From Saccostrea echinata (taxonomy: Eukaryota), in NCBI RefSeq assembly GCF_033153115.1, contig NW_026889808.1, forward strand, positions 496,001 through 560,000: DNA of 64,000 bases, in the 5' to 3' direction. Numbering within the stretch: the stretch's first letter is position 1; each line of letters begins with the position of its first letter. Positions 9,559 to 61,721 of the stretch are shown piece by piece. A model generated the notes under the pieces. It saw only the letters and a program-made list of their open reading frames with translations, searched no databases and was not told the DNA's origin. Made by a program: the position numbers and the translations under genes.

Positions 9559-9741
9559 NNNNNNNNNNNNNNNNNNNNNNNNNNNNNNNNNNNNNNNNNN
9601 NNNNNNNNNNNNNNNNNNNNNNNNNNNNNNNNNNNNNNNNNNNNNNNNNNNNNNNNNNNNNNNNNNNNNNNNNNNNNNNNNNNNNNNNNNNNNNNNNNNN
9701 NNNNNNNNNNNNNNNNNNNNNNNNNNNNNNNNNNNNNNNNN
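9559..9741. other. Assembly gap (183 N)
   Basis: Run of N. Confidence 1.
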
Positions 9742-11530: not shown

Positions 11531-14269
11531 TTATAGTTAACTATGTATTTTATTTAAAATGTACTTTTTAAAATTTTACCTTCCAAGGAGTATGATTTCC
11601 CTTCATATTAAGTTTTGTTTTTAAAGAAATAATTTTTTGCTCTTGGTTTTTTAATTTATTACTTTTATCAAATCAAAGATTTTTTAAATTTCAAATTCAT
11701 GTATGTTGTTTTCAATGACTATAGAAATCATTCCTATATATGAATAATTTTGTGAACTTTATTCAATATACTATCTCAAAGTCAAGATCATTTGTTAATG
11801 AGAGAGTAATTTCACAATGTTAGATCTGAATAACTTCAAACATGGGAATATTAATGCAAATAACGTCATAGACTATCATTATTTTGACTTATGTTAATTT
11901 GCGAAGTTAAGGATTCAAAAAAGAGGAACATCAGTCTGTTTTTTTCCCCGAAAAAATTATGCTACTTATAAAGAATGGTTTGGATCAAAATACATGTAAC
12001 AAAGAGGTTCATTACTCTCGCTATCTTTAAGATAATACGAATATCTTCATACATATATAATATACGTAATATTTTAACTTCCTGGCACAGATATATTCCT
12101 TTTTTGTACAAGCATAAAATATATTAATAGGCTCAAATAGTATGTCTTTCGGGTAATTCTGTATTACTTGTGATAAATATTTATGCTATCTGAATGGCAA
12201 TTCACAGTGATGATTGTCAGTTACCCACGTGTCTGAGTGCCTTAAGCTACAACAAATTCAATCCAGTCAATTATGAAAAGAATATATACCATTTCTTGAA
12301 AAAAAACCCAACAAGCGTGTCCACAAAACATATGCTTAATTAAACGGCAGGGGTTAATAGTCCGGTTATTAATAGTTTATACGCATAGCGCTGTCTTTTG
12401 TGTCATTTGTTAACAATGGATGCTTATTATTACAGGAATTGATCCTTGACTGATTGGAAATGTCAACTCATCTCAATTCTGTGAGTAGATAGATATCTGT
12501 AATTTTCACACCACTCTTAGGATTTCAAGTATTTCACATCTTCTTGATTTTCATACCCAATTTCTTTCAAATAGGCATAAAAAAATCAGGATGATTTTTT
12601 TTCATTTTTGTTTTGTATTGAATATCATATTGAGATGTACAATTTTGGTCGGGATTAAGATATTCTTTGTAAGTTATATTGATACAGTATTATTACTGTA
12701 ATTATATTATCACTTTGTAATCCTCTCTGTGTAATTATGAATCACCTTACCTTTCCACTAATTAAAGACAGAATACTAATTACATTTTAAAATTAAAACT
12801 AAAAATCTACAGAATAAGGATAAGGCATTATCGTACTGAATATGTCTATGCAATTGTTTTCCGGGTTTTAATTCATTCTCAAATGATTTCTAAAAAAAAA
12901 ATTGAATCACAGATTTTTACACGATATTGCAAAACGCTGGTCTGAATGTTTACAGGAAATACTAATTCTCTCTTTGTACTGGCCTGGACTTAATTCAAAT
13001 TGTTTCACAATCACTTTTTACCTTGCCTCTGCAGATAAATAAGAGCTATATATATATATTTTTAAAAAGTAAGATTAGGTAATTTCAACTCCTACAATGT
13101 AAATATTACATTTATATGATTGAACAAAGCAATTGGTAGAAACCATGCATGTCTTTTATATTGAGACCCAACCAAATGATGTATTTGCAAACAGAATCAT
13201 AACGAAAATTATAGTTGCCTCTCTGCTATATAATCTTTGATATTAAAATCTATAAAGTTCAAATGATATCAGCTGTAGGTGCAATAAAAGGTTTGATTGA
13301 TCAAGAACATCGTTTCCAATGATGTAATGGGCCCACGTCTGGCGAGTCGTTCTACAGGTTTCAAAATTTGTTCCGCTTTGTCAAGATCCGCCATTTGTCA
13401 TTATTTAACTCTGTGATGACCTATATATTATGTTATTATTCTACAGTAAATGGATTTTCAAGGTAAGTTTTCAGGAACTATATACCACAGATGAGTATTA
13501 AAGCGGAAAGAATTTATTGTCTTAATACGAATGGACAAACTGTTACACGATGTGAAAATGACATTAAAAAAAGTGCTAGACATTATTCCCCTATTACAAC
13601 CTTCGATGTATCAACGAATGTGAAAGACGCACACTTATGTCAACCTGTTAAAGGTAAGTGATCTTGTCAATGAATTAGACCTCTCACAGTCATGGAACCT
13701 CTTTAGGCCTAATTGCTTTTAAAATAATTTAATTGCGTAATTAATTTATTAAAGTAATCGACAAGCTAAGGTATTTTTCTTAAAGACATTTACAGTAAGT
13801 AACGTCCTTCGTAGTCATACTTATGTAATTGATTTAAGACGCATGGATTATATTCATTAACTTTTTTCGTTTGATATACAAATCCGACGTATTAAGGTCA
13901 GCTTTTTTTCTGGGCGTACATGTATTTAGGACCATCACAAGAATAATGTGTAAACTAAATAAAAGTTTTTCAGAGTAATTTCGACGATCAGGACAGAGTC
14001 TAGTCATGTACATATATCTTACTTCTTGTTTTGGCAAGTTCCTCAGTCATTGTATTACAAATCATGAAGGAATATTGTTTGTGAAATAGGTTAATGTATA
14101 TCCCCACCTTTCAATTAAGTCAAGGTCGTTTCAAGGTCACCATAATTTGCCCCACTTTCTGAAACAAAACAAACATGTAATTTAAATGTACTTGAGATTA
14201 CTTGCTCCAACTACGAAAAAAAAAAATCATTTGTATCATTCATAAAATAGAGGAGTAAGAATAAAGATC

Positions 14270-14288
14270 TTTTTATATTTTTTCCAGA
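14270..14288 (+). promoter_or_regulatory. Probable splice acceptor of the coding exon of paralog A
   Basis: Pyrimidine tract ttttatattttttccAG|; exon starts 14288, 224 nt before the ATG. Candidate donors AG|GTAAGT at 13463 and 13654. Confidence 0.6.
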
Positions 14289-14511
14289 TGCCATAAATCA
14301 GATCACTACTTCAGGCTACATATTCGAATCCAAGCATGATAGGGAGTTAGAGAGAAATCGAATTATTTGTGAATAGGCAGAAACCACTCCTTGATATCTT
14401 CAACTTCATGAAAAGCAAAACAATTTCGCCAAATCATATAATATCTATATACAAAGAGGGCAAAGGATTTATAAATGGACAAAATTCGCCTTTTGGCATT
14501 TCTACGCAGCC

Positions 14512-17500
14512 ATGTATTGGTATTCATTTTTAAATACATTTCTGGCGGCCTTGTTTTATATTTTTATGGCACATGGAAATGAAATGGGCAATGGTTGCAT
14601 ACCAGAGTGTAAAGTCACTAAGACCAATATAACTGACAACCATCTCCTCAGCCAAAATGATAAACCCCTGAAAACAGTTTCCATATCATTGTTCCTTGGA
14701 CTGAAAGAAAATAACTGTTCCATTAAGAATCAATGTCTTTTGAATAGCACAAGGATTTTGGAACACTACAACTTTAGTGATGATTCTATTGTAAGTGTTT
14801 TTAACTTTCAGTGCTACACGCCTCTTATAATACAAATAACACCGTACACCGGTAGGCATAGGCCAAATATTATATCATATATCCAGGTGATAAAATGTCA
14901 GATGACAGAAGAATCTTTTTACATTCTCGGAAGCATGGTTCTTCCTTTTCACGTGCTTTTGATGGACACAAATCTTCCAACGATTGAAAGTAAAGGCACG
15001 AACAAATCAATGTGCAACCTGATGAAACAAGTGACAACACTATGGATATTTAATAAAGCTTCACAAGATAATGTGACAGACTTGGAAGACATTATAAACA
15101 TGTTTCAGTGCAATCATGACTTTCCAAATATGAAAGATTTGACCATTCAGAACGTTAAGATCAATACGTCTTTATTCGATTTCAGTGCGAAATTTCCTAA
15201 TCTAGTTTCTCTGGAACTTTCACTGACGGGACTTCAAAATCCAATTCAATTTCCTTGGAGTGATTCATCTCCTTTACTCAGTTATAATCTTTCATCTTCG
15301 GAATATCTGCTCAATCACTATGCTAAATCCTTACACATAACTGTAGAAAAGCATCATTTTCGTAGATATCTTAATCTGAACATGAATAATATTTCTATCT
15401 TACAGAACTACGAATTCGAAGGCAGGCTACAAGCACTGAAATTCTCAGGAAACGGACTAACGGAATTACCAGAGAATTTGTTTCAGAAATTGAAACAGAT
15501 TGAACACATTGATATAAGTTTAAATAGCATAAAAAGACTCCCTTCCTCTTTATTTCGAGAACTTCCTTTGCTCAAGCATCTTGATTGCCACTCTAATAAT
15601 TTGACAGAGATACAGATGGATCTATTTATTGATAACAAGGAATTAATCTATATGGACTTTTCACGTAACAGAATCGAGAGAATCCATAAAGATGTTTTCA
15701 GATTCATGGAGAATTTGCAAGAGTTGCATTTACAAAATAATAATATAGTTTCATTGGAAAATGTGGAGTGGCCTTTCTATTCGACGAAACTGGAATTTTT
15801 ATATTTCGACGAAAATCCATTGATCCACCTACCAGACGTAGTATTCTACCTTAGAGCCATCAAACTGGCCAGCTTTAAATATACGCAAATTCATTTCACA
15901 AACTTTACTAAATATGTGAATAATCTAGAATATAGTTCGATAGCCGAACAATTAGTCAAAGGCTCCGTGCCCAAAAATGATCTTAGTTATAATGTTATCG
16001 TTAAAAATCCAAACTTGCTTCTCGATAATATCCTCGATAGAAACCGAAAAATTGATCTTACTGGAAGTAAAATAGACAACTTAAATATCGAATTTTTCGG
16101 AGAGCAACGAGAACTTAAGGAAAGATCAGGTAGAATGAAATTAAAGTTACTCTTGATTTTAAAGTACTTTGAAATCATTTTAGAAGGAACTCATCTTCGA
16201 TGCGATTGTGGTATTACACACCTTAGTAGACTTGTGGCAATCCTCGAGAAGGATGGTTTGCTTGATGGAAAGGAGTATTTCTTCAACGATTGGAAATGCT
16301 CCACTCCCCAAGAATTTAAAGGGAAAAACATGCTGAAAATACAAGAATCAGATACGTATTGTGAGAGAACTATTACAAACTGCCCATCAAATTGTACTTG
16401 TTATTCCAGATCGATAACACACATAACGATTGTTGATTGTCGAAATCGACTATATCGGGACTTGCCCAAAATTTTACCGGAGGGTATTCTCGACCTCTGG
16501 TTTCAGCATAATAACATATCTACGATCAATGAAGAAAATTTACAGTATCTACCGAATATAAGACAACTTCTTTTATCCGAAAATCAGTTAACAAGAATTA
16601 GTGATGGAGCCATAAGTAAAATGACTCTTCTTAGTACGTTGTATGTGGATTCCAATTACCTTGTTTCTCTTCCTAGGGCACTCAGAAATATGCGGCTGAT
16701 GTCCATGAATTTCATAAACAATCCATTAAAATGTGACTGTCATACGAAATGGATAAAACACTGGGTTCTAAAGAATAGCGATGTTGTGGAACGTGTGTCA
16801 GACATCACATGTAATGTAGATGATGAAGCAGAAAAGGGTAACTTTTTGATCCGAATTCCAGATGAAGATTTCGTTTGTTTAGAAGACTTTGACTCAGTTA
16901 AGCATGTAGTCATACCCAGCGTCACCAGTTCCTTGATACTGGTACTTCTCATCATTTTGCTGTGTTTGATGTATGTTTATAGGCTAGAAGTAAAGGTTTT
17001 ACTGTATATTTACTTTGGAATCCATCCATTTGATAAAGATGATAAGGATGGAAAAGAAATCATTGATGTTTTGGTTCTTCATGCCCCGGATACGACGGAA
17101 TGGGTGATGGAAAATGTTGTGAAGTACTTGGAATTTCAGAAAGATTATTACGTTGTGTGTGAAATGATGAGAGATTTTGTCGCTGGTTTTACCTATATGG
17201 AGAACATTGCAAGCATTGTAAAACATAGTAAGCGAATGCTGATAATTCTATCCCCCGAATTTATCGAAGACGACTTGTTAAAAGTAGCTTGGAATGAAGC
17301 GCAAGAAAAGATCAAAGAACTACGAACCAACTACGCCATTGTTGTGTGTCATGACGTAGTCTTGAAACAAGTAATGATAAAAGATATGCAGAGATATATT
17401 AAAAGAGGGCGATATATCGACGCAAATCAGGCGCTATTTCATGAAAAACTACTATACTCCATGCCACAGTATGAGGACCAGCATGGTAGAGTTAAAAGTC

Positions 17501-18243
17501 TTCCCGATATTAAAGACTTTATTCAGGCAACATACGGGGAAGAGGGATTCAATAATGACATGTACAAAAGACATGCTTTTGTTTCCTATTCCGATAGTGA
17601 AATGCCCTATATTATGAATGAATTAAGACCAACATTAGAAAATAATGGATATTTCTTATGCCTGCCTGATCGGGACTTTGTACCAGGTGCTTCAAAAGAG
17701 GAAAACATTTTAAAGGCTATTGACAGTTCCTTACATACATTGTTCATTCTTTCTGGTAACCACCTCGAAGACGAGTGGTCAGTTTTTACATTCAGAATAG
17801 CCAGTGAAAAGTCTTTACGTGTCCGAAGTAATCATTTAATTGTTATCATTGGTGAGGATGCTGACCTAGAAACCATGGACGAGGAAGTTCGATTTTACAT
17901 CAAAACTCACGTGACTCTCAGAGTGAACGAGAAGTGGTTTATTAAGAAGTTATTAAACTCTTTACCAGAAGTTGACGCTCCTATCCTTGATGTGAATGAC
18001 CAAGAGGATGATGATATTAAACACAATGTGCGCCATAAGCATCAGAAAGAAAGGGAGCCCAGGAGGGTGGTGGCTGAAATCAATCATTGTGCATATGACG
18101 ATAATGGGATTGTTAATGGTATGGGAAATGGGTATGCAGGAAACAGGACGGTTAAGTTTATTAAGAACGATAATCATGCTTATGTCAATGATGAAGACTA
18201 TCAAATTGAATTTACAGACATTTCCTTAGACGATGATGTTTAG
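14512..18243 (+). CDS. Toll-like receptor (multi-cysteine-cluster type) with two tandem TIR domains, paralog A, 1243 aa
   Basis: Good Kozak context (gcagccATG); signal peptide MYWYSFLNTFLAALFYIFMAHG; LxxLxLxxN repeats; LRRCT (CDC...WKC) + LRRNT (CPSNCTC...VDC) + 3-4 LRRs + second LRRCT (NPLKCDC); TM ~16906-16980; TIR1 ~17056-17466 (CEMMRDFVAG); TIR2 ~17560-17967 (HAFVSYS, CLPDRDFVPG); acidic tail. Single uninterrupted ORF. Confidence 0.95.
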   Translation: MYWYSFLNTFLAALFYIFMAHGNEMGNGCIPECKVTKTNITDNHLLSQNDKPLKTVSISLFLGLKENNCSIKNQCLLNSTRILEHYNFSDDSIVSVFNFQCYTPLIIQITPYTGRHRPNIISYIQVIKCQMTEESFYILGSMVLPFHVLLMDTNLPTIESKGTNKSMCNLMKQVTTLWIFNKASQDNVTDLEDIINMFQCNHDFPNMKDLTIQNVKINTSLFDFSAKFPNLVSLELSLTGLQNPIQFPWSDSSPLLSYNLSSSEYLLNHYAKSLHITVEKHHFRRYLNLNMNNISILQNYEFEGRLQALKFSGNGLTELPENLFQKLKQIEHIDISLNSIKRLPSSLFRELPLLKHLDCHSNNLTEIQMDLFIDNKELIYMDFSRNRIERIHKDVFRFMENLQELHLQNNNIVSLENVEWPFYSTKLEFLYFDENPLIHLPDVVFYLRAIKLASFKYTQIHFTNFTKYVNNLEYSSIAEQLVKGSVPKNDLSYNVIVKNPNLLLDNILDRNRKIDLTGSKIDNLNIEFFGEQRELKERSGRMKLKLLLILKYFEIILEGTHLRCDCGITHLSRLVAILEKDGLLDGKEYFFNDWKCSTPQEFKGKNMLKIQESDTYCERTITNCPSNCTCYSRSITHITIVDCRNRLYRDLPKILPEGILDLWFQHNNISTINEENLQYLPNIRQLLLSENQLTRISDGAISKMTLLSTLYVDSNYLVSLPRALRNMRLMSMNFINNPLKCDCHTKWIKHWVLKNSDVVERVSDITCNVDDEAEKGNFLIRIPDEDFVCLEDFDSVKHVVIPSVTSSLILVLLIILLCLMYVYRLEVKVLLYIYFGIHPFDKDDKDGKEIIDVLVLHAPDTTEWVMENVVKYLEFQKDYYVVCEMMRDFVAGFTYMENIASIVKHSKRMLIILSPEFIEDDLLKVAWNEAQEKIKELRTNYAIVVCHDVVLKQVMIKDMQRYIKRGRYIDANQALFHEKLLYSMPQYEDQHGRVKSLPDIKDFIQATYGEEGFNNDMYKRHAFVSYSDSEMPYIMNELRPTLENNGYFLCLPDRDFVPGASKEENILKAIDSSLHTLFILSGNHLEDEWSVFTFRIASEKSLRVRSNHLIVIIGEDADLETMDEEVRFYIKTHVTLRVNEKWFIKKLLNSLPEVDAPILDVNDQEDDDIKHNVRHKHQKEREPRRVVAEINHCAYDDNGIVNGMGNGYAGNRTVKFIKNDNHAYVNDEDYQIEFTDISLDDDV

Positions 18244-20081
18244 TTCATACTTTATATCTTTTCATTGCTCACCAAAAAAGTTTTACGTTATTACACGTAT
18301 GAATGAAATACTCATTTGTTCTGGGTGCTCAGATTTTGATTTTTTAAATGTATATTCTGAAAGTCAAAGGAGAGTGAAAATTACTTAAATTATTAAATAT
18401 ATTTTCTTTCTGTTTTCTCTTTTAGTTTAGGTAAATATACGAAACTCAATTTTTGTCGGCATAACAACAAATGTTAATTCCATATGTACAATTTGGAGTC
18501 AATAACTTACGAAAGGAAAATGAGATTAATCGTCGTAAGCAAAATGTTACCTGGCTTCAAGATCCTGAAGCAATTTAAAGCTTAAATCCGAATTTCATGT
18601 ATTGTCATAACATTTCATTATAGAAAGCACATAAAATTTAAAAAGTTTTAAAAATCATTTTTCTTTCATGTTGTTAATTTTAATTTTGACTGTCAGTTTA
18701 TAATATTCTTTTTTACGAATGTCTGGAATTTTAACTTAAGTCTAAGACTGCATCATTGTCCCAAAGCCGGAGGCTAGTGAAGGGCTTCCTGCATGGACAA
18801 AATATGGCTCTCAATGCAATTGAGAAATGAGGTTCTTTTGGAGTTGAACTATGTTCAATTTCCCTTGGCTTTCACTCACGAGCAAAACCACTGCGCGGGC
18901 AGTAAAGGTTATATAGCACCCTTCAGTGTGAGCCACTTTACTAAAAAGTGTACCATTACAATCAAAGGCAACTATATGCCTCCTCCAAAGAAATAACAAC
19001 ACAAAATCTTTACTTTTAATTTGACATGTTTTAAAAAAATAAAATAAAATTAGTTAAAACGAATAAATATACAAATTTATAAATTCCTACTTAATGAAAA
19101 AGGTGACGATAGCGAATTGGACAGTGATCGATCTTCTGTGAACAGGACATAAAACACGCCTCCCCCCCCCCATCCCCTGGAAATTCCTTAAATAATTGAC
19201 AATTCAACTCCCAGGAATACATTCTATACTGTTATTTTAACTTGCGTACGCCTACAATGACACTGGATTTAGATTTAATTCCTCGAAAGAGCGCAATTTT
19301 CTTTTTGATGTGCCGAAGGCTGGGAGAAATATGGAAATATTCTTTGGTTAATTTCAAAGATACTGCCATGATATTCATCATTTATTTAACTGTTCGATGG
19401 ATTCGATGGATATTTAGAAGTTTTAAAGATTGCAGATTGATGGCTGAAATTTTCATATATAATATTGAATCTTTTATATTGAAATTTCAAAAGAGTAAAA
19501 GAGTTACCCAGAGTAAAATAGTGTTACTCGGTTTATTTTTCCACGATAGAGTACTTGGGAATGTGACATATCAAAATCTTCACCAGTAATCACCATCAAA
19601 AAGTTTTTGCTACTTCATAATTTTGAAAGGGAAAATGCACCTGGCAAGATTTGAAGCATATTTGGAAGTAGGAATCTGTATCTAACTGATCCCTACACAT
19701 TTTATCAAGTTATCAAGGAAGAGAGTTAGTAAGCGTTAGGTGACGCTATACACTTATTATGGAATAGTCAGAATGATTTATAGAATGTATCCTTGTGGTA
19801 TAATCCATGCAGGTTAATATTAGATGTATAGGGGCTTTGAATGATTCTGCAAAACTATTAAAACCTTATCACTCATCCAGAAAATAAGGGCACTTGCAAT
19901 ACAATTTAATACAATCCCTATTTGATAAGGAATGACAAAGCATGATAAATAATGCTGGAAATGTATCTGTGTCAAATGCAGAAATTGGAAAAAATTGCAA
20001 CTTTAAGGACATATGACACACAAAAAATGGATGCCTGGAATGATATATATATATATATATATATATTTTACTTCGGTTCTA

Positions 20082-37319: not shown

Positions 37320-37474
37320 TGATTTCCAAGAAATTTGGAATAAACTAGAGTGTTAAACCAGACTCTTTAAGGACAAAAGTAAGGAAGAAATAATGCAAAA
37401 AGAATTTTTATTTCTGATTAGAAGACATTAAAATCGAAGACCTTTATTTCAATAGACGATGATTTTTAGTGAAA

Positions 37475-40400
37475 ATGATTTGGCATCCACTTTTCCCTGT
37501 CATAATGTCCTTCGTTACCATCGTTTCTAGCATTAAGGCTACAGGAACAGGAAGTGACGAACCGGAAGTAAAATCTAAAGCTAATTACTGTAACATTTCT
37601 GAATGTCACCTTAGAATAGAAGAAATAAGTACATCAAGGTTGCGTAATCGTCTGGATTCTCCACTTCAATTAAGCGGGAAAAGGGTCACTATAGACAACA
37701 AAAACAACTGTACAATAAATTCAACTTTACTACGAGAGAATTTGGACATGAAAATTGACCTCAGTATTGGATTAATTTCCGTCAAATGTTCCAACAACAT
37801 CAGCATTCATTTTTCATCAGACGGAACATTATTTCACACCGATATGTTTCTACATCTCCAAGTTTTAACCTGCAGTATCTCTATGGATTCCCTTTTTGTG
37901 TTAAATAGAAACTTTGGAAATATTTATTCATTGGAACTTGACAGGACACCTTTACCTAGTGACCAAACCTCTTGCAATTTCTCTTATCTTACGAAAGATG
38001 TATGTAAAACATGGGAATCTGTGCATTCAATAAAGCTTTCAGCATCTACATCAGAAAGTCCACATAATAATATTTCTAGGGTTTTTAACTGCCCAGGAAA
38101 CCTAACTGCAGTTAGGGAATTGATACTAAGAAATTGGCAAATTGATGCACATGGAGCATCTTTTCTCAAGGAGAAGTTTCCGTTTTTACAAAATTTAGAG
38201 ATTTCTTTTTCAATGATGACGATTCCTCCTCAATTTCCATGGGATGAGACAAATCGAACGTTTCCTCATAATTTTTCAGAATCTGCCTATACAATATTTC
38301 ACTATTTACATAGTTATCATGTTGTTCTTCCAAGACAATTCTACAAACGTACTATCAATCTGAATTCCAATTCCATAACGGATCTTTCCGACTTTCGCTT
38401 TTTTGGATACATTCAACTATTAGATCTGTCATACAATAAACTTCAGGTTTTAAATGAAAGCTCATTTAATGGACTGCAAGGCGTTCAACATTTAAATCTG
38501 AGGAATAACAAGCTGAAAACAATTTCAAGTCAATCATGGAGAAGTCTGAAATTGTTACGTCACTTGAACCTGCACTCTAATGACATAACAGAAATACAGC
38601 CTGATATGTTTGACAATAACCCGGAAATTGAATATTTAGATCTTTCAAACAACAATATCAATAGAATAGAAGAATATTCCTTTACAAATCTATTCAAGTT
38701 AAAAGAAATTCGCTTAGAATCCAACGCTATAGTAAATCTACCAAGCAATTTTCTTCCTTCCAATTCACTTAATTTTCAATATTTATATTTAAATCAAAAT
38801 CCTTTAATAGATTTTCCTTTGTCAATTGTTTACTTTCGATCCTTAGAGAAAGTAAGTCTCCGACACACAAATATTGACCTACATGAATTTAAAGATAATG
38901 AGCTGCTACTGACTATTAACTACTACGCTATTAGAACTAGTGTAGCAAAATGGTCGGAAGAAAATATCAATGGAAATAAGGAAAAAAGTCCAGAACGACT
39001 TCGACAGATTGATTTATCGGGATCTCGAGTGGAAAATATAGAGCTAGACGTGTTTAAGAGTGGAAGAGATACTAACAAATTCAAACACCTTATTTGGAGA
39101 TTATCTGTTATTCTGAAACATTTTGAATTTGTTCTTGATGGAATCAGTTTACAGTGTGATTGTAGAATAAATCAATTCAACAGGTTTGTACAGGAAGCCA
39201 TAAATAGAAATCTTTTTAGTGGCAGAGAGTATTTCTTTAATGATTGGAAATGTTCTTTTCCTTTGGAATTTAAAGACAAACCACTGGTCAGTATAAAGGA
39301 ATCGAATACCTACTGCGTCACCATCACCCCACACTGTCCACGAAATTGCACGTGTCTGAAGCGATCAGTTAGCGGTATCATCATTGTCGATTGTCGTCAG
39401 CGTGGTTATTTCTCTCTTCCCGAGCAACTCCCTGATGGAATTCTAGACATCTGGTTTCAGTACAATAATATATCAGTAATTCGAAATATTGGCTATTTGA
39501 ACCGTATTCGCCGGCTCTATCTTTCCCAAAATCAAATTGTGGAAATTGAGAACGATGCCATTGAGAGCATGCACAACATCCGTCATCTTCATGTCGACTC
39601 CAACAATCTTGTTGTTATGCCTACCAAAATCCAGGAAAGGGATATGAAGTATATAAATATTGATAACAATCCTTTTAAGTGCGATTGCAATGCTCTTTGG
39701 ATGAAGCACTGGTTGCTGTCAAATTCAGAATCATTTTCTGACGTCACGGGTATAACGTGCAACATCGATGATCAAAATGAAAAAGGGACAAAGTTTGTAA
39801 ACATTCCAGATTCCGACTTTATTTGCTTGGATGAATACAATACACTTAAGGATTTGATAATTCCAATCTCAGTCAGCACTTTATCTATAATCCTGATTAT
39901 AATTGGCATATGCTTTATCCACCTATTCAGCTTTGAAGTAAAAGTTCTTATGTTTATGTATTTTGGGATCCACCCCTTTGACTTAGACGAAGACGAATCG
40001 AGAGAAGCTGTTGATGTCCTTGTTGTCCATGCTCCTGGATTAACGAATTGGGTGATGGAGAACATTGTGGGTCCATTAGAAGCACAGAAAGCCCAGTATA
40101 TTGTATGCGAAATGATGAGAGATTTCATCCCTGGATATTCCATTCAAGATAATTTTGAAAGCATTGTAAAAAATAGCAAGCGAATGATTTTGGTACTTTC
40201 CCCCGAAATTCTCGCTGACCAGTTGCTAAAATTAGTTTGGAGTGAGGCACAAGAAAAAATAAAAGAATTGCGATCGAATTATGTGGTAATGGTATACCAT
40301 AATCTTAATGCGAACGATATCATGAACGAGGATATGTTGCGTTATATAAATCACAGTAAAACCATGACATCAAATGATCGACTTTTGCGTCAGAAACTTC

Positions 40401-41644
40401 TATATTGTATGCCTGTCATATTTGAGAATACTGATGAGGAGGATCAACGTCTGGAAATTCGACATTGTGTGAAAAAGATGTACGGTGACGAAATAGGTAA
40501 ACAAGTTCTGTTTGAACGCCATGTTTTTATTTCATACTCCAACGCCGAGATAAGATGTTTGTTGGATGAAATAAAACCGCTGCTAGAGGACAAGGGTTAT
40601 ACCTTATGTCTTCCTGACAGAGATTTCATACCGGGTGCACCACAGGAGGAGAATATCCTTAAAGCGATAGACACCTGTCTTCACACAATATTTATTCTGT
40701 CTGGGAATCACCTGCAAGATGAGTGGTCCATTTTTACATTCAGAACTGCATGGGAAAAATCACTCAGAAACAAGAGTAATTATCTGATAGTAATTCTAAG
40801 TGAAGATGTAGAGCTCGATGATATGGATGATGAAATCAAGTACCATGTGAAGACGCACGTTACGCTACGAATTGGCGATGAGTGGTTTGCGACGAAACTT
40901 TTAAACTCACTAGTTGATGTTAATACTTATGCACGATGTGTTGTAGATGGAAACAACCGAGAAGACTTCTGTTGTTTAGATTACGATGAACAGAGTATTT
41001 CCGATAGCATGTTGTTCGACAATCATTGTGATATTGCAGCCAGGGATAGTAGAATTGAAAACGTCGAACATGGGATACAAATTGAAGAAGAAAAACGTTG
41101 GCGTAGGGTTGTGTCTGTTGATATTCATAAAGAATTTGAAGTCGAAAATATGCAAGGGATCGAATACAATGACAATGAAGATTTTATAAATGTTTATGAA
41201 ATTGAAGCGGTTGAATACAATGCTACTGAAAGTAATTGCAATGGGCAAGAAAACAGTTTTTGTGAAGTGCAGGAAAAATGTGAATGTAGATCAATCATTG
41301 AGCACTCTGACGGTGATGAATTTGAAGATTTAAGATTTTTGCATTTTAACAATAATACAGAGAGAGTAATTAGCTTTAATATTAAAGAGGTGTTTCATCT
41401 TAATGTTACAGAAGATGAAGAAAACCTGTCAGATATCAAAAACGAAAATGTTTGTTCTAGTGTCAGTTCTGTTAGAGATTTCGACCAAAGCAGGAATTTC
41501 CGTAGGTTAAACATCCACTCGGAAACGGATGAGAGCAATATACATGTTACTCCTCTATCCAATCAGCTGAAAACTGACTATGACGTCAGCGATTGTGATG
41601 TAAGTGACAGTGACAATAATACTGACTCCGAAAGTAATAATTAA
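37475..41644 (+). CDS. Toll-like receptor with two tandem TIR domains, paralog B, ~1389 aa
   Basis: The ORF track starts at a GTG (37469); the first ATG is 37475 and is followed by a signal peptide (MIWHPLFPVIMSFVTIVSSIKA). Same architecture as paralog A; TM ~39858-39930; TIR1 ~40004-40414 (RDFIPG); TIR2 ~40511-40912 (HVFISYS, CLPDRDFIPG); ~240-aa acidic tail. Confidence 0.95.
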   Translation: MIWHPLFPVIMSFVTIVSSIKATGTGSDEPEVKSKANYCNISECHLRIEEISTSRLRNRLDSPLQLSGKRVTIDNKNNCTINSTLLRENLDMKIDLSIGLISVKCSNNISIHFSSDGTLFHTDMFLHLQVLTCSISMDSLFVLNRNFGNIYSLELDRTPLPSDQTSCNFSYLTKDVCKTWESVHSIKLSASTSESPHNNISRVFNCPGNLTAVRELILRNWQIDAHGASFLKEKFPFLQNLEISFSMMTIPPQFPWDETNRTFPHNFSESAYTIFHYLHSYHVVLPRQFYKRTINLNSNSITDLSDFRFFGYIQLLDLSYNKLQVLNESSFNGLQGVQHLNLRNNKLKTISSQSWRSLKLLRHLNLHSNDITEIQPDMFDNNPEIEYLDLSNNNINRIEEYSFTNLFKLKEIRLESNAIVNLPSNFLPSNSLNFQYLYLNQNPLIDFPLSIVYFRSLEKVSLRHTNIDLHEFKDNELLLTINYYAIRTSVAKWSEENINGNKEKSPERLRQIDLSGSRVENIELDVFKSGRDTNKFKHLIWRLSVILKHFEFVLDGISLQCDCRINQFNRFVQEAINRNLFSGREYFFNDWKCSFPLEFKDKPLVSIKESNTYCVTITPHCPRNCTCLKRSVSGIIIVDCRQRGYFSLPEQLPDGILDIWFQYNNISVIRNIGYLNRIRRLYLSQNQIVEIENDAIESMHNIRHLHVDSNNLVVMPTKIQERDMKYINIDNNPFKCDCNALWMKHWLLSNSESFSDVTGITCNIDDQNEKGTKFVNIPDSDFICLDEYNTLKDLIIPISVSTLSIILIIIGICFIHLFSFEVKVLMFMYFGIHPFDLDEDESREAVDVLVVHAPGLTNWVMENIVGPLEAQKAQYIVCEMMRDFIPGYSIQDNFESIVKNSKRMILVLSPEILADQLLKLVWSEAQEKIKELRSNYVVMVYHNLNANDIMNEDMLRYINHSKTMTSNDRLLRQKLLYCMPVIFENTDEEDQRLEIRHCVKKMYGDEIGKQVLFERHVFISYSNAEIRCLLDEIKPLLEDKGYTLCLPDRDFIPGAPQEENILKAIDTCLHTIFILSGNHLQDEWSIFTFRTAWEKSLRNKSNYLIVILSEDVELDDMDDEIKYHVKTHVTLRIGDEWFATKLLNSLVDVNTYARCVVDGNNREDFCCLDYDEQSISDSMLFDNHCDIAARDSRIENVEHGIQIEEEKRWRRVVSVDIHKEFEVENMQGIEYNDNEDFINVYEIEAVEYNATESNCNGQENSFCEVQEKCECRSIIEHSDGDEFEDLRFLHFNNNTERVISFNIKEVFHLNVTEDEENLSDIKNENVCSSVSSVRDFDQSRNFRRLNIHSETDESNIHVTPLSNQLKTDYDVSDCDVSDSDNNTDSESNN

Positions 41645-54450: not shown

Positions 54451-56544
54451 ATGGATTTCCTCAATATGCATTTAAACTCTAATTTTTTTCTGCATCTCTG
54501 CATTTTGACTGTTTATGTTTCTACCGCTAACATCGTGACAAAGTGTGGCATCCCAGAATGCATTTCAGCCAAAGTCTCTTCTCCTTCCTATAATGTTATG
54601 AAAATGAACAACAAGCCCCTGAAGACCAATGTAACAGGGTTTTATCTTGTCCCTCCAGTATCAAACGAATGCTACCTCAGGACCTCAGATATAATGGAAA
54701 GTTATCACTTCGATGGACACCAAATGGTCGGTGTGTTGGTTTTACGGTGTTCCTCCAGAGCTATAATTCATCTTATACCTGATGTAAGACCAAAATATTC
54801 AAATGTGTTATTTCAGATTCAGATAGATAAATGTCTTCTCACTACGGACAGTTTAAACGCCATCAGTCAGAGGGTAAAGATCAACCATTTATCATTTATT
54901 GACACGTATCCCCTGGTGAGCCACTCATACTGTGATGGGTCTAGCGTAGTCAACGCAGACTGTGGATTCTGGAGTTCTGCCACAGCTATCGGCATTATTC
55001 TTCCGCAGAACCTAAATTCCATTAATATTTCAAGACTTTTCTGGTGCAACAGAACGTTTCCTAACATTAAACAATTACTTTTTCGAAGATGGGACTTAAA
55101 TAATCAAGATCTTCTCTACCTCAAAACAAGATTTCCAAACTTACAAGATTTGCAAATATCGGATTCCTCTCTGAAAGTACCGCCTTCATTTCCTTGGAAT
55201 AATGAAACCTTCAGATTTAACAATAATATGTCGTATTCAGAGACTGGATTTTACGACTCAGCATCGGTCTTCAACATTGAAATCGAACCAAACATTTGGA
55301 AGCGTGTGCTAAACTTGAACTCAAATAACATACAGGTTTTGACAAATTTTATGTTTGATGGGCATCTAGACATGTTAAAGCTTTCAAGGAATGGACTTAT
55401 GTCTGTAGGACCATTCACTTTCTCCAGAATAAAAGGTCTTCAGCATCTCGACCTAAGCGAGAATTTATTATCAGACATTCCTGCCAATATTTTCCGCGGC
55501 CTCACACGCCTCAGGCACATAAATCTTCATGCCAATCTCCTGTCCATTATTCCTGATGAGATGTTTTATGATAATACAGAGCTTGTCTACCTTGACCTTT
55601 CAAACAACAGCATAACAATAATTGGGTCAAATGCTTTCTCAAGATTACATCATCTAGAAGACTTACGACTTGAATATAACCGTATTGTCACAATCAGTTA
55701 CTCCATGTTTCCAGCATATTCTGTATCTTTTCAGTCTTTGACACTTGATGGTAATCCAATGAAAGAATTACCTGAGGCAATTTTCTATTTCAAAACTTTG
55801 TATGATGTTAGTCTCCGGTATACTAATATCGACTTTAAGAACTTTACGCAAATGTTACTTGATTTAGATTTTTCTCTCCTGGCAGAAGGAAACGCACAAG
55901 GTCAGACAACAACAGAAGATGAATTGCTAACGAGATCTCCTCGGAAATTGAAAAGGATTGACCTCACCGGCAGTAAAATAAATAATCTTCATCTTAAGTA
56001 TTTTGGGACTGATATCTCTACTAGAAATTCTGCTATACTCAGAATGAAACTCCTTATGCTACTGAAATATTTTCATCTGATTCTTACCGACAATCCAATA
56101 AACTGTGATTGTAAAATTAACCATCTAACTAGATTTATAAAATATGCCCTAGCTAAAGGTTTTCTACGAGGAAACGAATATTTCTTTAACGACTGGAAGT
56201 GTTCTAATCCAAAAGAACTAAGATATATACCGGTAACGCAAGTTCCAGAAGCAGAAACCTACTGTCCCAAAGACATAGCTAATTGCCCGGTTGAATGCTC
56301 ATGCTACGAACGGTCTATCAGCGGCGTCACTATTGTTGATTGTCGAAATGTCGGACTGAGAGAACTTCCTAGATCACTTCCAGAAGGAATTTTAGACTTG
56401 TGGTTTCAGAACAACAACATTTCAACTCTTACACGAGAGGAATATCTCCCCAGAACTCGACAACTTTTACTAACTGGAAATAAAAATATTAGAATTAATA
56501 CAAATTTACTTCAAAATCTTCATATCTTAAAAATTACCACATAA
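54451..56544 (+). CDS. Ectodomain-only TLR paralog C (signal peptide + LRRs + LRRCT/LRRNT; no TM, no TIR), 697 aa; secreted protein or truncated pseudogene
   Basis: Collinear with A/B (CGIPEC, FPW, LNLNSNNI, IDLTGS, EYFFNDWKCS, LPEGILDLWFQ). It stops within the second LRR block, and no TM/TIR-coding sequence is recognisable downstream in the window. AATAAA at 56823-56828. Confidence 0.8.
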   Translation: MDFLNMHLNSNFFLHLCILTVYVSTANIVTKCGIPECISAKVSSPSYNVMKMNNKPLKTNVTGFYLVPPVSNECYLRTSDIMESYHFDGHQMVGVLVLRCSSRAIIHLIPDVRPKYSNVLFQIQIDKCLLTTDSLNAISQRVKINHLSFIDTYPLVSHSYCDGSSVVNADCGFWSSATAIGIILPQNLNSINISRLFWCNRTFPNIKQLLFRRWDLNNQDLLYLKTRFPNLQDLQISDSSLKVPPSFPWNNETFRFNNNMSYSETGFYDSASVFNIEIEPNIWKRVLNLNSNNIQVLTNFMFDGHLDMLKLSRNGLMSVGPFTFSRIKGLQHLDLSENLLSDIPANIFRGLTRLRHINLHANLLSIIPDEMFYDNTELVYLDLSNNSITIIGSNAFSRLHHLEDLRLEYNRIVTISYSMFPAYSVSFQSLTLDGNPMKELPEAIFYFKTLYDVSLRYTNIDFKNFTQMLLDLDFSLLAEGNAQGQTTTEDELLTRSPRKLKRIDLTGSKINNLHLKYFGTDISTRNSAILRMKLLMLLKYFHLILTDNPINCDCKINHLTRFIKYALAKGFLRGNEYFFNDWKCSNPKELRYIPVTQVPEAETYCPKDIANCPVECSCYERSISGVTIVDCRNVGLRELPRSLPEGILDLWFQNNNISTLTREEYLPRTRQLLLTGNKNIRINTNLLQNLHILKITT

Positions 56545-61589: not shown

Positions 61590-61721
61590 NNNNNNNNNNN
61601 NNNNNNNNNNNNNNNNNNNNNNNNNNNNNNNNNNNNNNNNNNNNNNNNNNNNNNNNNNNNNNNNNNNNNNNNNNNNNNNNNNNNNNNNNNNNNNNNNNNN
61701 NNNNNNNNNNNNNNNNNNNNN
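61590..61721. other. Assembly gap (132 N)
   Basis: Run of N. Confidence 1.

Follow-up and report, generated by a model that had tools for sequence, protein, structure and literature searches.

Why a single Toll-like receptor (TLR) should carry two cytoplasmic TIR domains of unlike sequence, and what the less canonical of the two contributes, is the question raised by a 64,000-nucleotide stretch of the genome of the oyster Saccostrea echinata (RefSeq assembly GCF_033153115.1, contig NW_026889808.1, positions 496,001 to 560,000 of the forward strand), hereafter referred to as the window. It harbors a predicted TLR gene, paralog A, whose translated product contains a membrane-proximal domain (TIR1) and a distal domain (TIR2), as well as a second gene of the same architecture, paralog B. 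Both genes encode leucine-rich repeats (LRRs), a transmembrane segment and two TIR domains, homologues exist, and the TIRs of A fall into orthologous TIR1 and TIR2 clades, which makes it nearly certain that they are members of the mollusc class known as twin-TIR TLRs, Toll-2 or SPP-2TIR. The architecture is already known, and its finding here is a re-discovery of a published receptor class. Tolls with two TIRs were first described in Hyriopsis (HcToll-2; Ren 2014), the name twin-TIR TLRs derives from Gerdol 2017, a survey of the tandem-TIR Toll-2 receptors covered 29 molluscs (Cao 2016; PMC4929906) and the subfamily SPP-2TIR was placed by Saco 2023. As to the role of the second domain, the explanation we favor, with a probability of roughly 0.6, is a cooperative two-TIR platform in which adaptors dock mainly on TIR2 and TIR1 acts as a constrained, specialised partner.

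Two TIR domains of unequal character

The tandem region of paralog A (17056-17967) is stop-free in frame 1 and encodes 304 amino acids (residues 849-1152). When each TIR half was scanned separately against the Pfam family PF01582 (cut-off: 21.3 bits), TIR1 scored 33.6 bits in A and 32.9 bits in B, and TIR2 47.0 and 50.0 bits, respectively. Both halves exceed the cut-off and as such represent genuine TIR domains, with TIR1 the weaker match. The asymmetry described in the original prediction was borne out in its details. Box 1 of TIR1 is atypical (IDVLVLHAP in A, VDVLVVHAP in B), aligning it with the TLR15 TIR by HMMER and in a three-way alignment both place a Leu at the αC Trp position, and the segments WVMEN.V..LE.QK..Y.VCEMMRDF, SKRM...LSPE and EAQEKIKELR.NY are common to the TIR1 domains of A and B. 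TIR2 is canonical-looking, with the motifs HAFVSYS (A) or HVFISYS (B) and LCLPDRDF[VI]PG, and is the more conserved of the two domains, sharing 64% identity between A and B over 133 columns, compared with 55% over 137 columns for TIR1. The linker, put at about 30 amino acids, comprises 34 residues in both A and B (family median between hidden Markov model (HMM) envelopes: 32 amino acids; range: 22-190), with an A-B identity of 12%, and the start of the C-terminal tail shares 17% identity.

Residue usage at the diagnostic positions was counted in 80 TIR1, 107 single-TIR and 80 TIR2 domains (Table 1).

Table 1. Occurrence of diagnostic residues in TIR1, single-TIR and TIR2 domains
Position	TIR1	Single-TIR	TIR2
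Box-1 Asp	77/80	101/107	18/80
Box-1 Phe	9/80	99/107	64/80
Box-1 Tyr	14/80	79/107	70/80
BB-loop Pro	7/80	67/107	56/80
BB-loop Gly	80/80	105/107	79/80
αC Trp	0/80	96/107	67/80
αC Glu (WCxxE)	0/80 (Ala 52)	98/107	0/80 (Thr 54)
Box-3 Trp	absent among the five commonest residues (Leu 61)	60/107	46/80

TIR2 retains the canonical FxSY of box 1, the BB-loop Pro, the αC Trp and the WF of box 3, the first three of which are lost from TIR1, where the BB-loop Pro position is mostly occupied by Ala, Val or Ile across the 80 twin-TIR proteins. TIR1 retains the box-1 Asp, the WV of αA, the S[KR]R preceding βC and the terminal Y.MP, the first three of which are lost from TIR2. Single-TIR domains have a majority residue in 72 columns, and this residue is kept in TIR1 in 28, in TIR2 in 36 and in both in 17 of them. 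TIR2 is the more canonical domain, yet each TIR keeps ancestral residues that have been lost from the other. Going by these alignments, both TIRs lack the αC Glu of the single-TIR Tolls, a small addition to the class as described in the accessible portions of the earlier publications. The column of this Glu (WCxxE) is presumably that of the NADase catalytic Glu of SARM1 and of plant and bacterial TIRs.

Kinship and origin of the TIR pair

A phmmer search of the PDB with TIR1 (E≤1) returned 21 matches, all of which are TLRs, IL-1R-family members or Hydra TRR-2, headed by TLR15 (32.6 bits), TRR-2 (29.8 bits) and TLR6 (29.5 bits), while MyD88, MAL, TRAM and TRIF are absent (0/21). The best matches of TIR2 are TLR1 (68.9 bits), TLR6 (67 bits) and TLR10 (60.9 bits), with MyD88 at ~21 bits. 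By sequence, TIR1 classifies as a receptor-type TIR, and a MAL- or TRAM-like descent is contradicted by the composition of the 21 matches.

Two maximum likelihood trees were constructed, one of 70 rows including 24 twin-TIR proteins chosen for spread, from which the near-duplicates P0006, P0007, P0011 and P0016 were left out, and one of 78 rows with 18 twin-TIR proteins, to which gastropod, chiton and foreign single-TIR rows were added. In the 70-row tree the TIR1 domains form one clade (100/100; stem: 1.82) and the TIR2 domains another (96/93; stem: 0.49), the internal branching of which is congruent, and TIR1 and TIR2 of paralog A nest in their respective clades with the Mytilus, Pecten, Mizuhopecten, Pinctada, Sinanodonta and Potamilus rows. 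TIR1 is still a single clade in the 78-row tree (98/85). Phylogenetically, each domain thus has a clade of its own across the bivalves, and the congruence of the two subtrees suggests that the duplication is older than the sampled bivalve lineages. The claim that the tandem pair is old and maintained is upheld by these clades, by an identical domain order in gastropods and a chiton, and by the purifying selection acting on TIR1 (see below).

An internal duplication was stated as the origin of the TIR pair by Saco 2023, and this origin is plausible on our alignments, given that TIR1 and TIR2 of paralog A share 39 identities over 134 aligned positions with one gap of two amino acids, that six columns have a majority residue common to TIR1 and TIR2 but not to the single TIRs, and that the αC Glu is missing from both. 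The pair would have arisen through duplication of the TIR of a single P-type Toll early in mollusc evolution, and the two copies may then have diverged in complementary ways, each keeping different ancestral residues.

Selective constraint on the two domains

Conservation was calculated from an alignment of 41 rows, with haplotype copies, P0032 and P0035 left out of the statistics. Mean pairwise identity amounts to 0.545 in TIR1 (invariant columns: 22/137) and 0.582 in TIR2 (18/133), and to 0.245 in the linker (0/34) and 0.15 in the first 18 residues of the tail (0/18). The structural elements with the highest conservation are the BB loop (0.91), αB (0.88) and αC (0.85) in TIR2 and the BB loop (0.82), βB (0.80) and βC (0.77) in TIR1, and the αD region is loose in both domains (0.60).

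Synonymous divergence (dS) is saturated between A and B, as well as between A and two further paralogs of the same contig, D and E, with the NG86 method failing or yielding dS values of ~2 or more, such that the non-synonymous divergence (dN) alone is usable in these comparisons. For A and B it amounts to 0.34 in TIR1, 0.25 in TIR2 and 1.03 in the linker. In the recent paralogs D and E, dN/dS (NG86) is 0.087 for TIR1 (13 replacements; dS: 0.52), 0.042 for TIR2 (8 replacements; dS: 0.85) and 0.133 for the linker, and TIR1 is therefore not evolving neutrally in this per-domain comparison, neutrality being the outcome that would have refuted the original prediction. Contigs of four public sequencing runs, presumed to be RNA and drawn from no more than two studies and three samples, furthermore show five synonymous and no replacement differences in TIR1, ten and one in TIR2, one and eight in the tail, and seven and four in the ectodomain, as counted among the 40 differences that were listed and classified (12 more exist). 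Both TIR domains are under strong purifying selection.

The dS between D (L005; C59:432464-436399) and E (L003; C59:445856-449791) ranges from 0.03 to 0.14 in the stalk, transmembrane and juxtamembrane segments, versus 0.5 to 0.85 in the TIRs and linker. This unevenness between the vicinity of the transmembrane segment and the TIRs points to a gene conversion event by which the 5′ part was recently exchanged between the two tandem paralogs. Recombination has been described as frequent in the Toll-2 family (Cao 2016; PMC4929906).

Predicted structure of the tandem TIR region

AlphaFold2 (AF2) models were generated for residues 824-1160 of paralog A and the equivalent part of paralog B, two-domain chains of 337-342 residues. 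The A model, based on an alignment of 34 sequences, attained a mean pLDDT of 83.1 and a pTM of 0.82, and the B model (49 sequences) a mean pLDDT of 87.4 and a pTM of 0.85. Both comprise two complete β-α TIR folds and a short linker helix (model positions 177-185 in A and 181-188 in B; block pLDDT: 56-81), with block pLDDT values in TIR1 of A ranging from 78 to 93 and mostly ~90. A high pTM for two domains of equal size indicates that the predictor sets a definite mutual orientation, which hints that the packing of TIR1 against TIR2 may be fixed.

Foldseek and VIA searches confirmed the TIR fold, with matches to TLR1, TLR10, TLR2, TLR6 and Hydra TRR-2 (Z: 18.6). The TMq values of these searches (≤0.36) show that one domain is matched at a time, and a solved chain matching both TIRs together was not found among the listed Foldseek and VIA matches. 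One VIA row aligns model positions 26-164 (TIR1) to a SPARTA TIR (Z: 15.7), and nearly all other rows align TIR2. Full-text literature searches, the coverage of which leaves out most subscription journals, likewise retrieved no paper on a modelled or solved tandem TIR. In TIR assemblies the αB/αC surface is described as contacting the CD loop and αD of the other strand, and an incoming MyD88 is proposed to dock on the BB surface of the nucleator, where the assemblies grow by templating (Clabbers 2021; PMC8110528).

Role of the TIR pair in signalling

In the survey of Cao 2016 (PMC4929906), TIR-1 was designated the extra domain and TIR-2 the one common to single-TIR Tolls, and in a reporter assay of Hcu_Toll-2-2 in S2 cells (section 3.6) activity decreased in the order full length, LRR+TM+TIR-2, LRR+TM+TIR-1 (TM: transmembrane segment). 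This deletion experiment, of the kind put forward as a check in the original prediction, points to a positive and cooperative input of both TIRs and away from an inhibitory TIR1. Signalling to NF-kB/AMP reporters through both TIRs is known for the class from this assay only. Within the cooperative platform both TIRs would take a positive part in signalling, with TIR2 as the main docking surface for MyD88-type adaptors and TIR1 as a fixed partner adding valency, such that a ligand-dimerised receptor would present four TIRs. Several points weigh against this explanation. The split of TIR1 and TIR2 from the single TIRs has values of 76/20 in the 70-row tree and appears in 27% of the bootstrap trees of the 78-row set, so that the sister relation is not recovered reliably, and the TIR1 stem is long, at 1.82 changes per column. 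The uneven dS of D and E is of note, as the suggested gene conversion could distort the per-domain dN/dS ratios. The four sequencing runs are RNA by guess only, the fixed packing is read from pTM, and the deletion data were obtained for a unionid member by over-expression in Drosophila S2 cells, using a shrimp promoter, rather than for the oyster gene or in oyster cells.

On this explanation, TIR1 would be neither an inhibitor nor a spacer in decay. Its lower Pfam score (33 versus 47-50 bits), the loss of the box-1, BB-Pro and αC-Trp residues and the long tree stem could be taken to mean that it degenerates and is kept for its length only, with TIR2 signalling alone, an explanation made extremely improbable by a dN/dS of 0.087, by 22/137 invariant columns versus 0/34 in the linker, which is a true spacer, by run contigs with no replacement and five synonymous differences, by a block pLDDT mostly ~90 and by the signalling of a construct with TIR-1 only (Cao 2016; PMC4929906). 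The candidate role of TIR1 as a spacer or pseudo-domain is already refuted by the constraint data. A cap that masks TIR2 until ligand binds has a precedent in SARM1, in which the TIR is inhibited intramolecularly, though through the ARM domains. The packing predicted by AF2 (pTM: 0.82 and 0.85) could occlude a TIR2 surface; an autoinhibitory TIR1 is nevertheless very improbable, as in the sole published deletion test, of a unionid member, the removal of TIR-1 lowered reporter activity, the truncated receptor not being constitutively active as indicated in S2 cells, and TIR-1 by itself also signalled (Cao 2016; PMC4929906). Moreover, the conservation peaks of TIR2 in the BB loop, αB and αC are no less compatible with exposed docking surfaces than with buried ones. 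TIR1 might alternatively be a built-in bridge, an attached sorting TIR that is MAL- or TRAM-like in function rather than descent and templates MyD88 onto TIR2. Its conservation despite having the BB Pro in 7/80 and the αC Trp in 0/80 sequences points to a specialised surface, the pTM values suggest a defined TIR1:TIR2 pair, the full-length receptor outsignals either single-TIR construct (Cao 2016; PMC4929906) and TIR assemblies template on the BB surface of a nucleator (Clabbers 2021; PMC8110528). Such a bridge is conceivable but doubtful, considering that adaptor TIRs account for 0/21 of the TIR1 matches in the PDB, that TIR1 lies between the membrane and TIR2 rather than distally, and that a construct with TIR-1 only signalled alone, which is unexpected of a pure bridge (Cao 2016; PMC4929906).

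The outputs of the two domains may instead branch, with TIR2 recruiting MyD88 and TIR1 another bivalve TIR-domain protein or a SARM- or TRIF-like route. The complementary retention of ancestral residues (28 of the 72 columns in TIR1, 36 in TIR2 and 17 in both) is compatible with such branching, as is a genome with well over 100 TIR loci. Where TIR1 has Ala, Val or Ile in place of the BB-loop Pro, vertebrate TLR3, which uses TRIF, has Ala. Branching is unlikely, however, since both single-TIR constructs drove the same reporter (Cao 2016; PMC4929906). More speculatively, TIR1 and TIR2 could form a fixed asymmetric intramolecular pair that copies one step of the two-stranded MyD88/MAL lattice (BB-EE head-to-tail or BC-CD lateral), the receptor dimer then providing a ready 2x2 nucleus that templates MyD88 without a MAL-like adaptor. 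If so, the complementary loss of residues would be the footprint of the surfaces that each TIR still uses, and these receptors would have solved TIR nucleation naturally by way of a 'covalent heterodimer' that has been kept since the ancestor of the molluscs. The old division of labour with a bridging or capping TIR1 that was originally predicted can be retained as regards its age and maintenance, but not as regards the cap, in view of the deletions reported in Cao 2016, and the 21 PDB matches speak against an adaptor descent.

Gene models and transcription

Three large open reading frames (ORFs) are located on the + strand of the AT-rich window (GC: 0.27-0.37), namely paralogs A, B and C (Table 2).

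Table 2. Features of the TLR genes in the window
Feature	Residues	Position	Strand	Description
Paralog A		14512-18243	+	Intronless ORF, 1243 aa
Transmembrane segment of A	801-823	16912-16980	+	Hydrophobic run VIPSVTSSLILVLLIILLCLMYV, read by eye
Juxtamembrane motif of A	824-848	16981-17055	+	YRLExKVLxYIYxGxHPFDKD; best-conserved cytoplasmic segment
TIR1 of A	849-985	17056-17466	+	Membrane-proximal, divergent; box 1 IDVLVLHAP, BB loop RDFVAG, no αC Trp
Inter-TIR linker of A	986-1019	17467-17568	+	34 aa; fast-diverging spacer
TIR2 of A	1020-1152	17569-17967	+	Distal, canonical-looking; box 1 HAFVSYS, BB loop LCLPDRDFVPG, αC Trp, box 3 WF
C-terminal tail of A	1153-1243 + stop	17968-18243	+	Evolving fast
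Contig-covered extent of A		14217-18524	+	Probable transcript; ~295 nt upstream and ~280 nt downstream of the ORF
Paralog B		37469-41644	+	1391-aa ORF, architecture as in A
TIR1 of B		~40004-40414	+	
TIR2 of B		~40517-40915	+	
Paralog C		54451-56544	+	697-aa ORF, ectodomain only; Pfam: LRR families only

The paralog A product consists of a hydrophobic N-terminus, a multiple-cysteine-cluster LRR ectodomain, the transmembrane segment, TIR1, linker and TIR2, and an acidic tail, with Pfam matches to LRR_8 (80 bits in three stretches) and TIR (70 bits in two stretches). Its transmembrane segment and cysteine clusters were called by eye from the translation, in which an LRRNT-like CPSNCTC comes after an internal CxC...C cluster (LRRCT-like CDC...C...C), and a second CDC cluster precedes the transmembrane segment. 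The cysteine clusters together with the single hydrophobic segment correspond to the multiple-cysteine-cluster (P-type) layout. Mean pairwise identity is 0.34 in the transmembrane segment and 0.655 in the juxtamembrane motif (invariant columns: 9/25), the latter being more conserved than either TIR and modelled by AF2 with low confidence (block pLDDT: 51-77). Paralogs A and B share 40% identity (464/1153), the TIR-containing cytoplasmic part aligning without gaps, and the B product likewise has Pfam matches to LRR families and to TIR in two stretches. The paralog C ORF stops inside the second LRR block, and a tblastn search with the region of A from the transmembrane segment to TIR2 (E≤1e-3) matched A and B alone within the window, with no similar transmembrane- or TIR-coding sequence elsewhere in the window, indicating that C is a truncated or ectodomain-only copy. 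Runs of N are found at 9559-9741 (183 bases) and 61590-61721 (132 bases), distant from the TLR genes.

The contigs of the four public runs delimit paralog A on both sides, depth being zero in 4/4 runs at 13300-14087 and 18619-19200. Single contigs of the runs X1 (16778-18481) and X4 (16677-18093) cross TIR1, linker and TIR2, from the transmembrane segment through to the 3′ flank. This bounded coverage and the contigs spanning both TIRs represent a transcript pattern, with TIR1 and TIR2 on one unspliced piece. Within the ectodomain-coding part, an X1 contig contains a GT..AG joint (14790>15406) that skips 615 nt in frame and removes residues 94-298, and one X4 contig uses the same donor with another AG acceptor (14790>16184), skipping 1393 nt out of frame. 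The skipped segment is possibly an 'exitron' subject to alternative splicing, the TLR being intronless otherwise.

Distribution, domain order and genomic copies

The homologue search yielded 41 proteins, 40 of which have TIR Pfam hits, with lengths mostly between 1040 and 1380 amino acids and identities of 41-87% over the TIR region, including proteins of Saccostrea, Pinctada, Pecten, Mytilus, Sinanodonta and Potamilus. All species-named rows (19/19) are bivalve (Saccostrea, Pinctada, Pecten, Ylistrum, Mizuhopecten, Mytilus, Sinanodonta, Potamilus), and two Saccostrea echinata proteins match paralogs E and B with identities of 99.0% and 98.7%, respectively. The four TIR1 sequences from this genome were furthermore combined into a profile and searched against 1.84 billion representatives. 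The best 150 of the 1179 hits obtained at E≤1e-3 were used, and the 41 homologues and 138 new proteins were scored with one HMM for TIR1 and another for TIR2. In 80 of these 179 proteins a TIR1-type domain precedes a TIR2-type domain, and the reverse order is found in none of the 179. A single domain occurs in 85/179, all scoring higher on the TIR2 HMM and none being TIR1-type. Four proteins were classed as having one TIR1-type domain, namely P0109 and P0142, in which a weak second domain is present, P0162, which is a 130-aa fragment, and P0128, which is a near tie (79 versus 78 bits). The remaining ten are fragments, have two or three widely spaced TIR2-type domains or lack an HMM hit. Among the 179 proteins, TIR1-type domains occur solely upstream of a TIR2-type domain, and this order, which is never reversed, adds to the class as set out in the available text of the earlier reports. 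In the proteins P0073, P0074, P0075 and P0096 (1281-2169 amino acids), two or three TIR2-type domains are separated by 600-1000 residues. These proteins are unlikely to be true multi-TIR receptors and probably result from gene models in which tandem single-TIR TLRs were fused.

With the family-specific HMMs, more distant twin-TIR members were recognised in Mya and Argopecten, in the gastropods Nucella, Littorina and Haliotis and in the chiton Liolophura. No complete tandem TIR was reported for gastropods by SMART in Cao 2016 (PMC4929906). On HMM scores, the gastropod and chiton proteins with TIR1-type and TIR2-type domains are a small addition to the class as it appears there. The twin layout in these lineages agrees with the mollusc-level conservation of the SPP-2TIR orthogroup given in Saco 2023.

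A search of the whole 923-Mb assembly, in which the window corresponds to C59:496001-560000, with the TIR1-linker-TIR2 query produced 127 matches, of which 119 are restricted to query positions ≥162 (the TIR2 half) and eight span the whole query. The latter are D, E, A and B on C59 and the same four genes on C25, in inverted order and with 99-100% protein identity, on account of which C59 appears to be an alternative haplotype, retained in the assembly, that corresponds to part of C25. The twin-TIR clusters extend over C59:433964-536924 and C25:25389223-25440336, and the spacing from E to A is ~65.7 kb on C59 versus ~15.9 kb on C25, a structural change of ~50 kb or an assembly difference. In a search with TIR1 alone, the best non-twin hit scored 48.4 bits, about the same as its own TIR2 (45.6 bits), and the nearest non-twin relatives are TLR ORFs, while the best single-TIR hit of TIR2 scored 76 bits.

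The HPFD core of the juxtamembrane motif was detected with a loose regular expression in 61/79 twin-TIR proteins and 25/72 single-TIR relatives, and WHPFD or WHPWD stands just before box 1 in 12/12 printed single-TIR examples, including a toll-like protein of the brachiopod Lingula. Because single-TIR P-type Tolls have it ahead of their TIR as well, the motif was rejected as twin-specific and is taken to be ancestral to P-type Tolls.

Comparison with known systems

At present, the analysis is chiefly of value in that it annotates a cluster of three oyster TLR genes correctly. Should the two TIRs prove to be a hard-wired asymmetric pair, the twin-TIR receptors would furthermore offer a simple natural system for MyD88 nucleation by receptor TIRs. 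The adaptors MAL/TIRAP and TRAM share the TIR fold (MAL 5uzb, Z: 15.0; TRAM 9dlg, Z: 14.8; both aligned on the TIR2 half of the model), but show no sequence kinship beyond the fold and are separate soluble or lipid-anchored proteins. The vertebrate TLR2/TLR1 and TLR2/TLR6 heterodimers also form a two-TIR signalling platform of unequal partners, as described in PMC11394124 (2024). Their TIRs are located on separate chains joined by ligand, however, whereas a covalent link joins those of the twin-TIR receptors, a dimer of which would present four. The single-TIR P-type or multiple-cysteine-cluster Tolls (SPP group, Drosophila Toll type, Lingula 'protein toll-like') have the same ectodomain type and the same YR.E.KV.LY...HPFD motif before the first TIR, and reciprocal HMM tests against them gave TIR2 scores of 90-139 bits. 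They differ in having one TIR, in which YDAFVSY, RDFxPG, WCxxEF and FW are all present. From the published twin-TIR class itself the oyster genes differ in nothing essential, sharing with it the multiple-cysteine-cluster LRR ectodomain, transmembrane segment, TIR-1 and TIR-2, the phylum, the tandem gene clusters and the intronless ORF.

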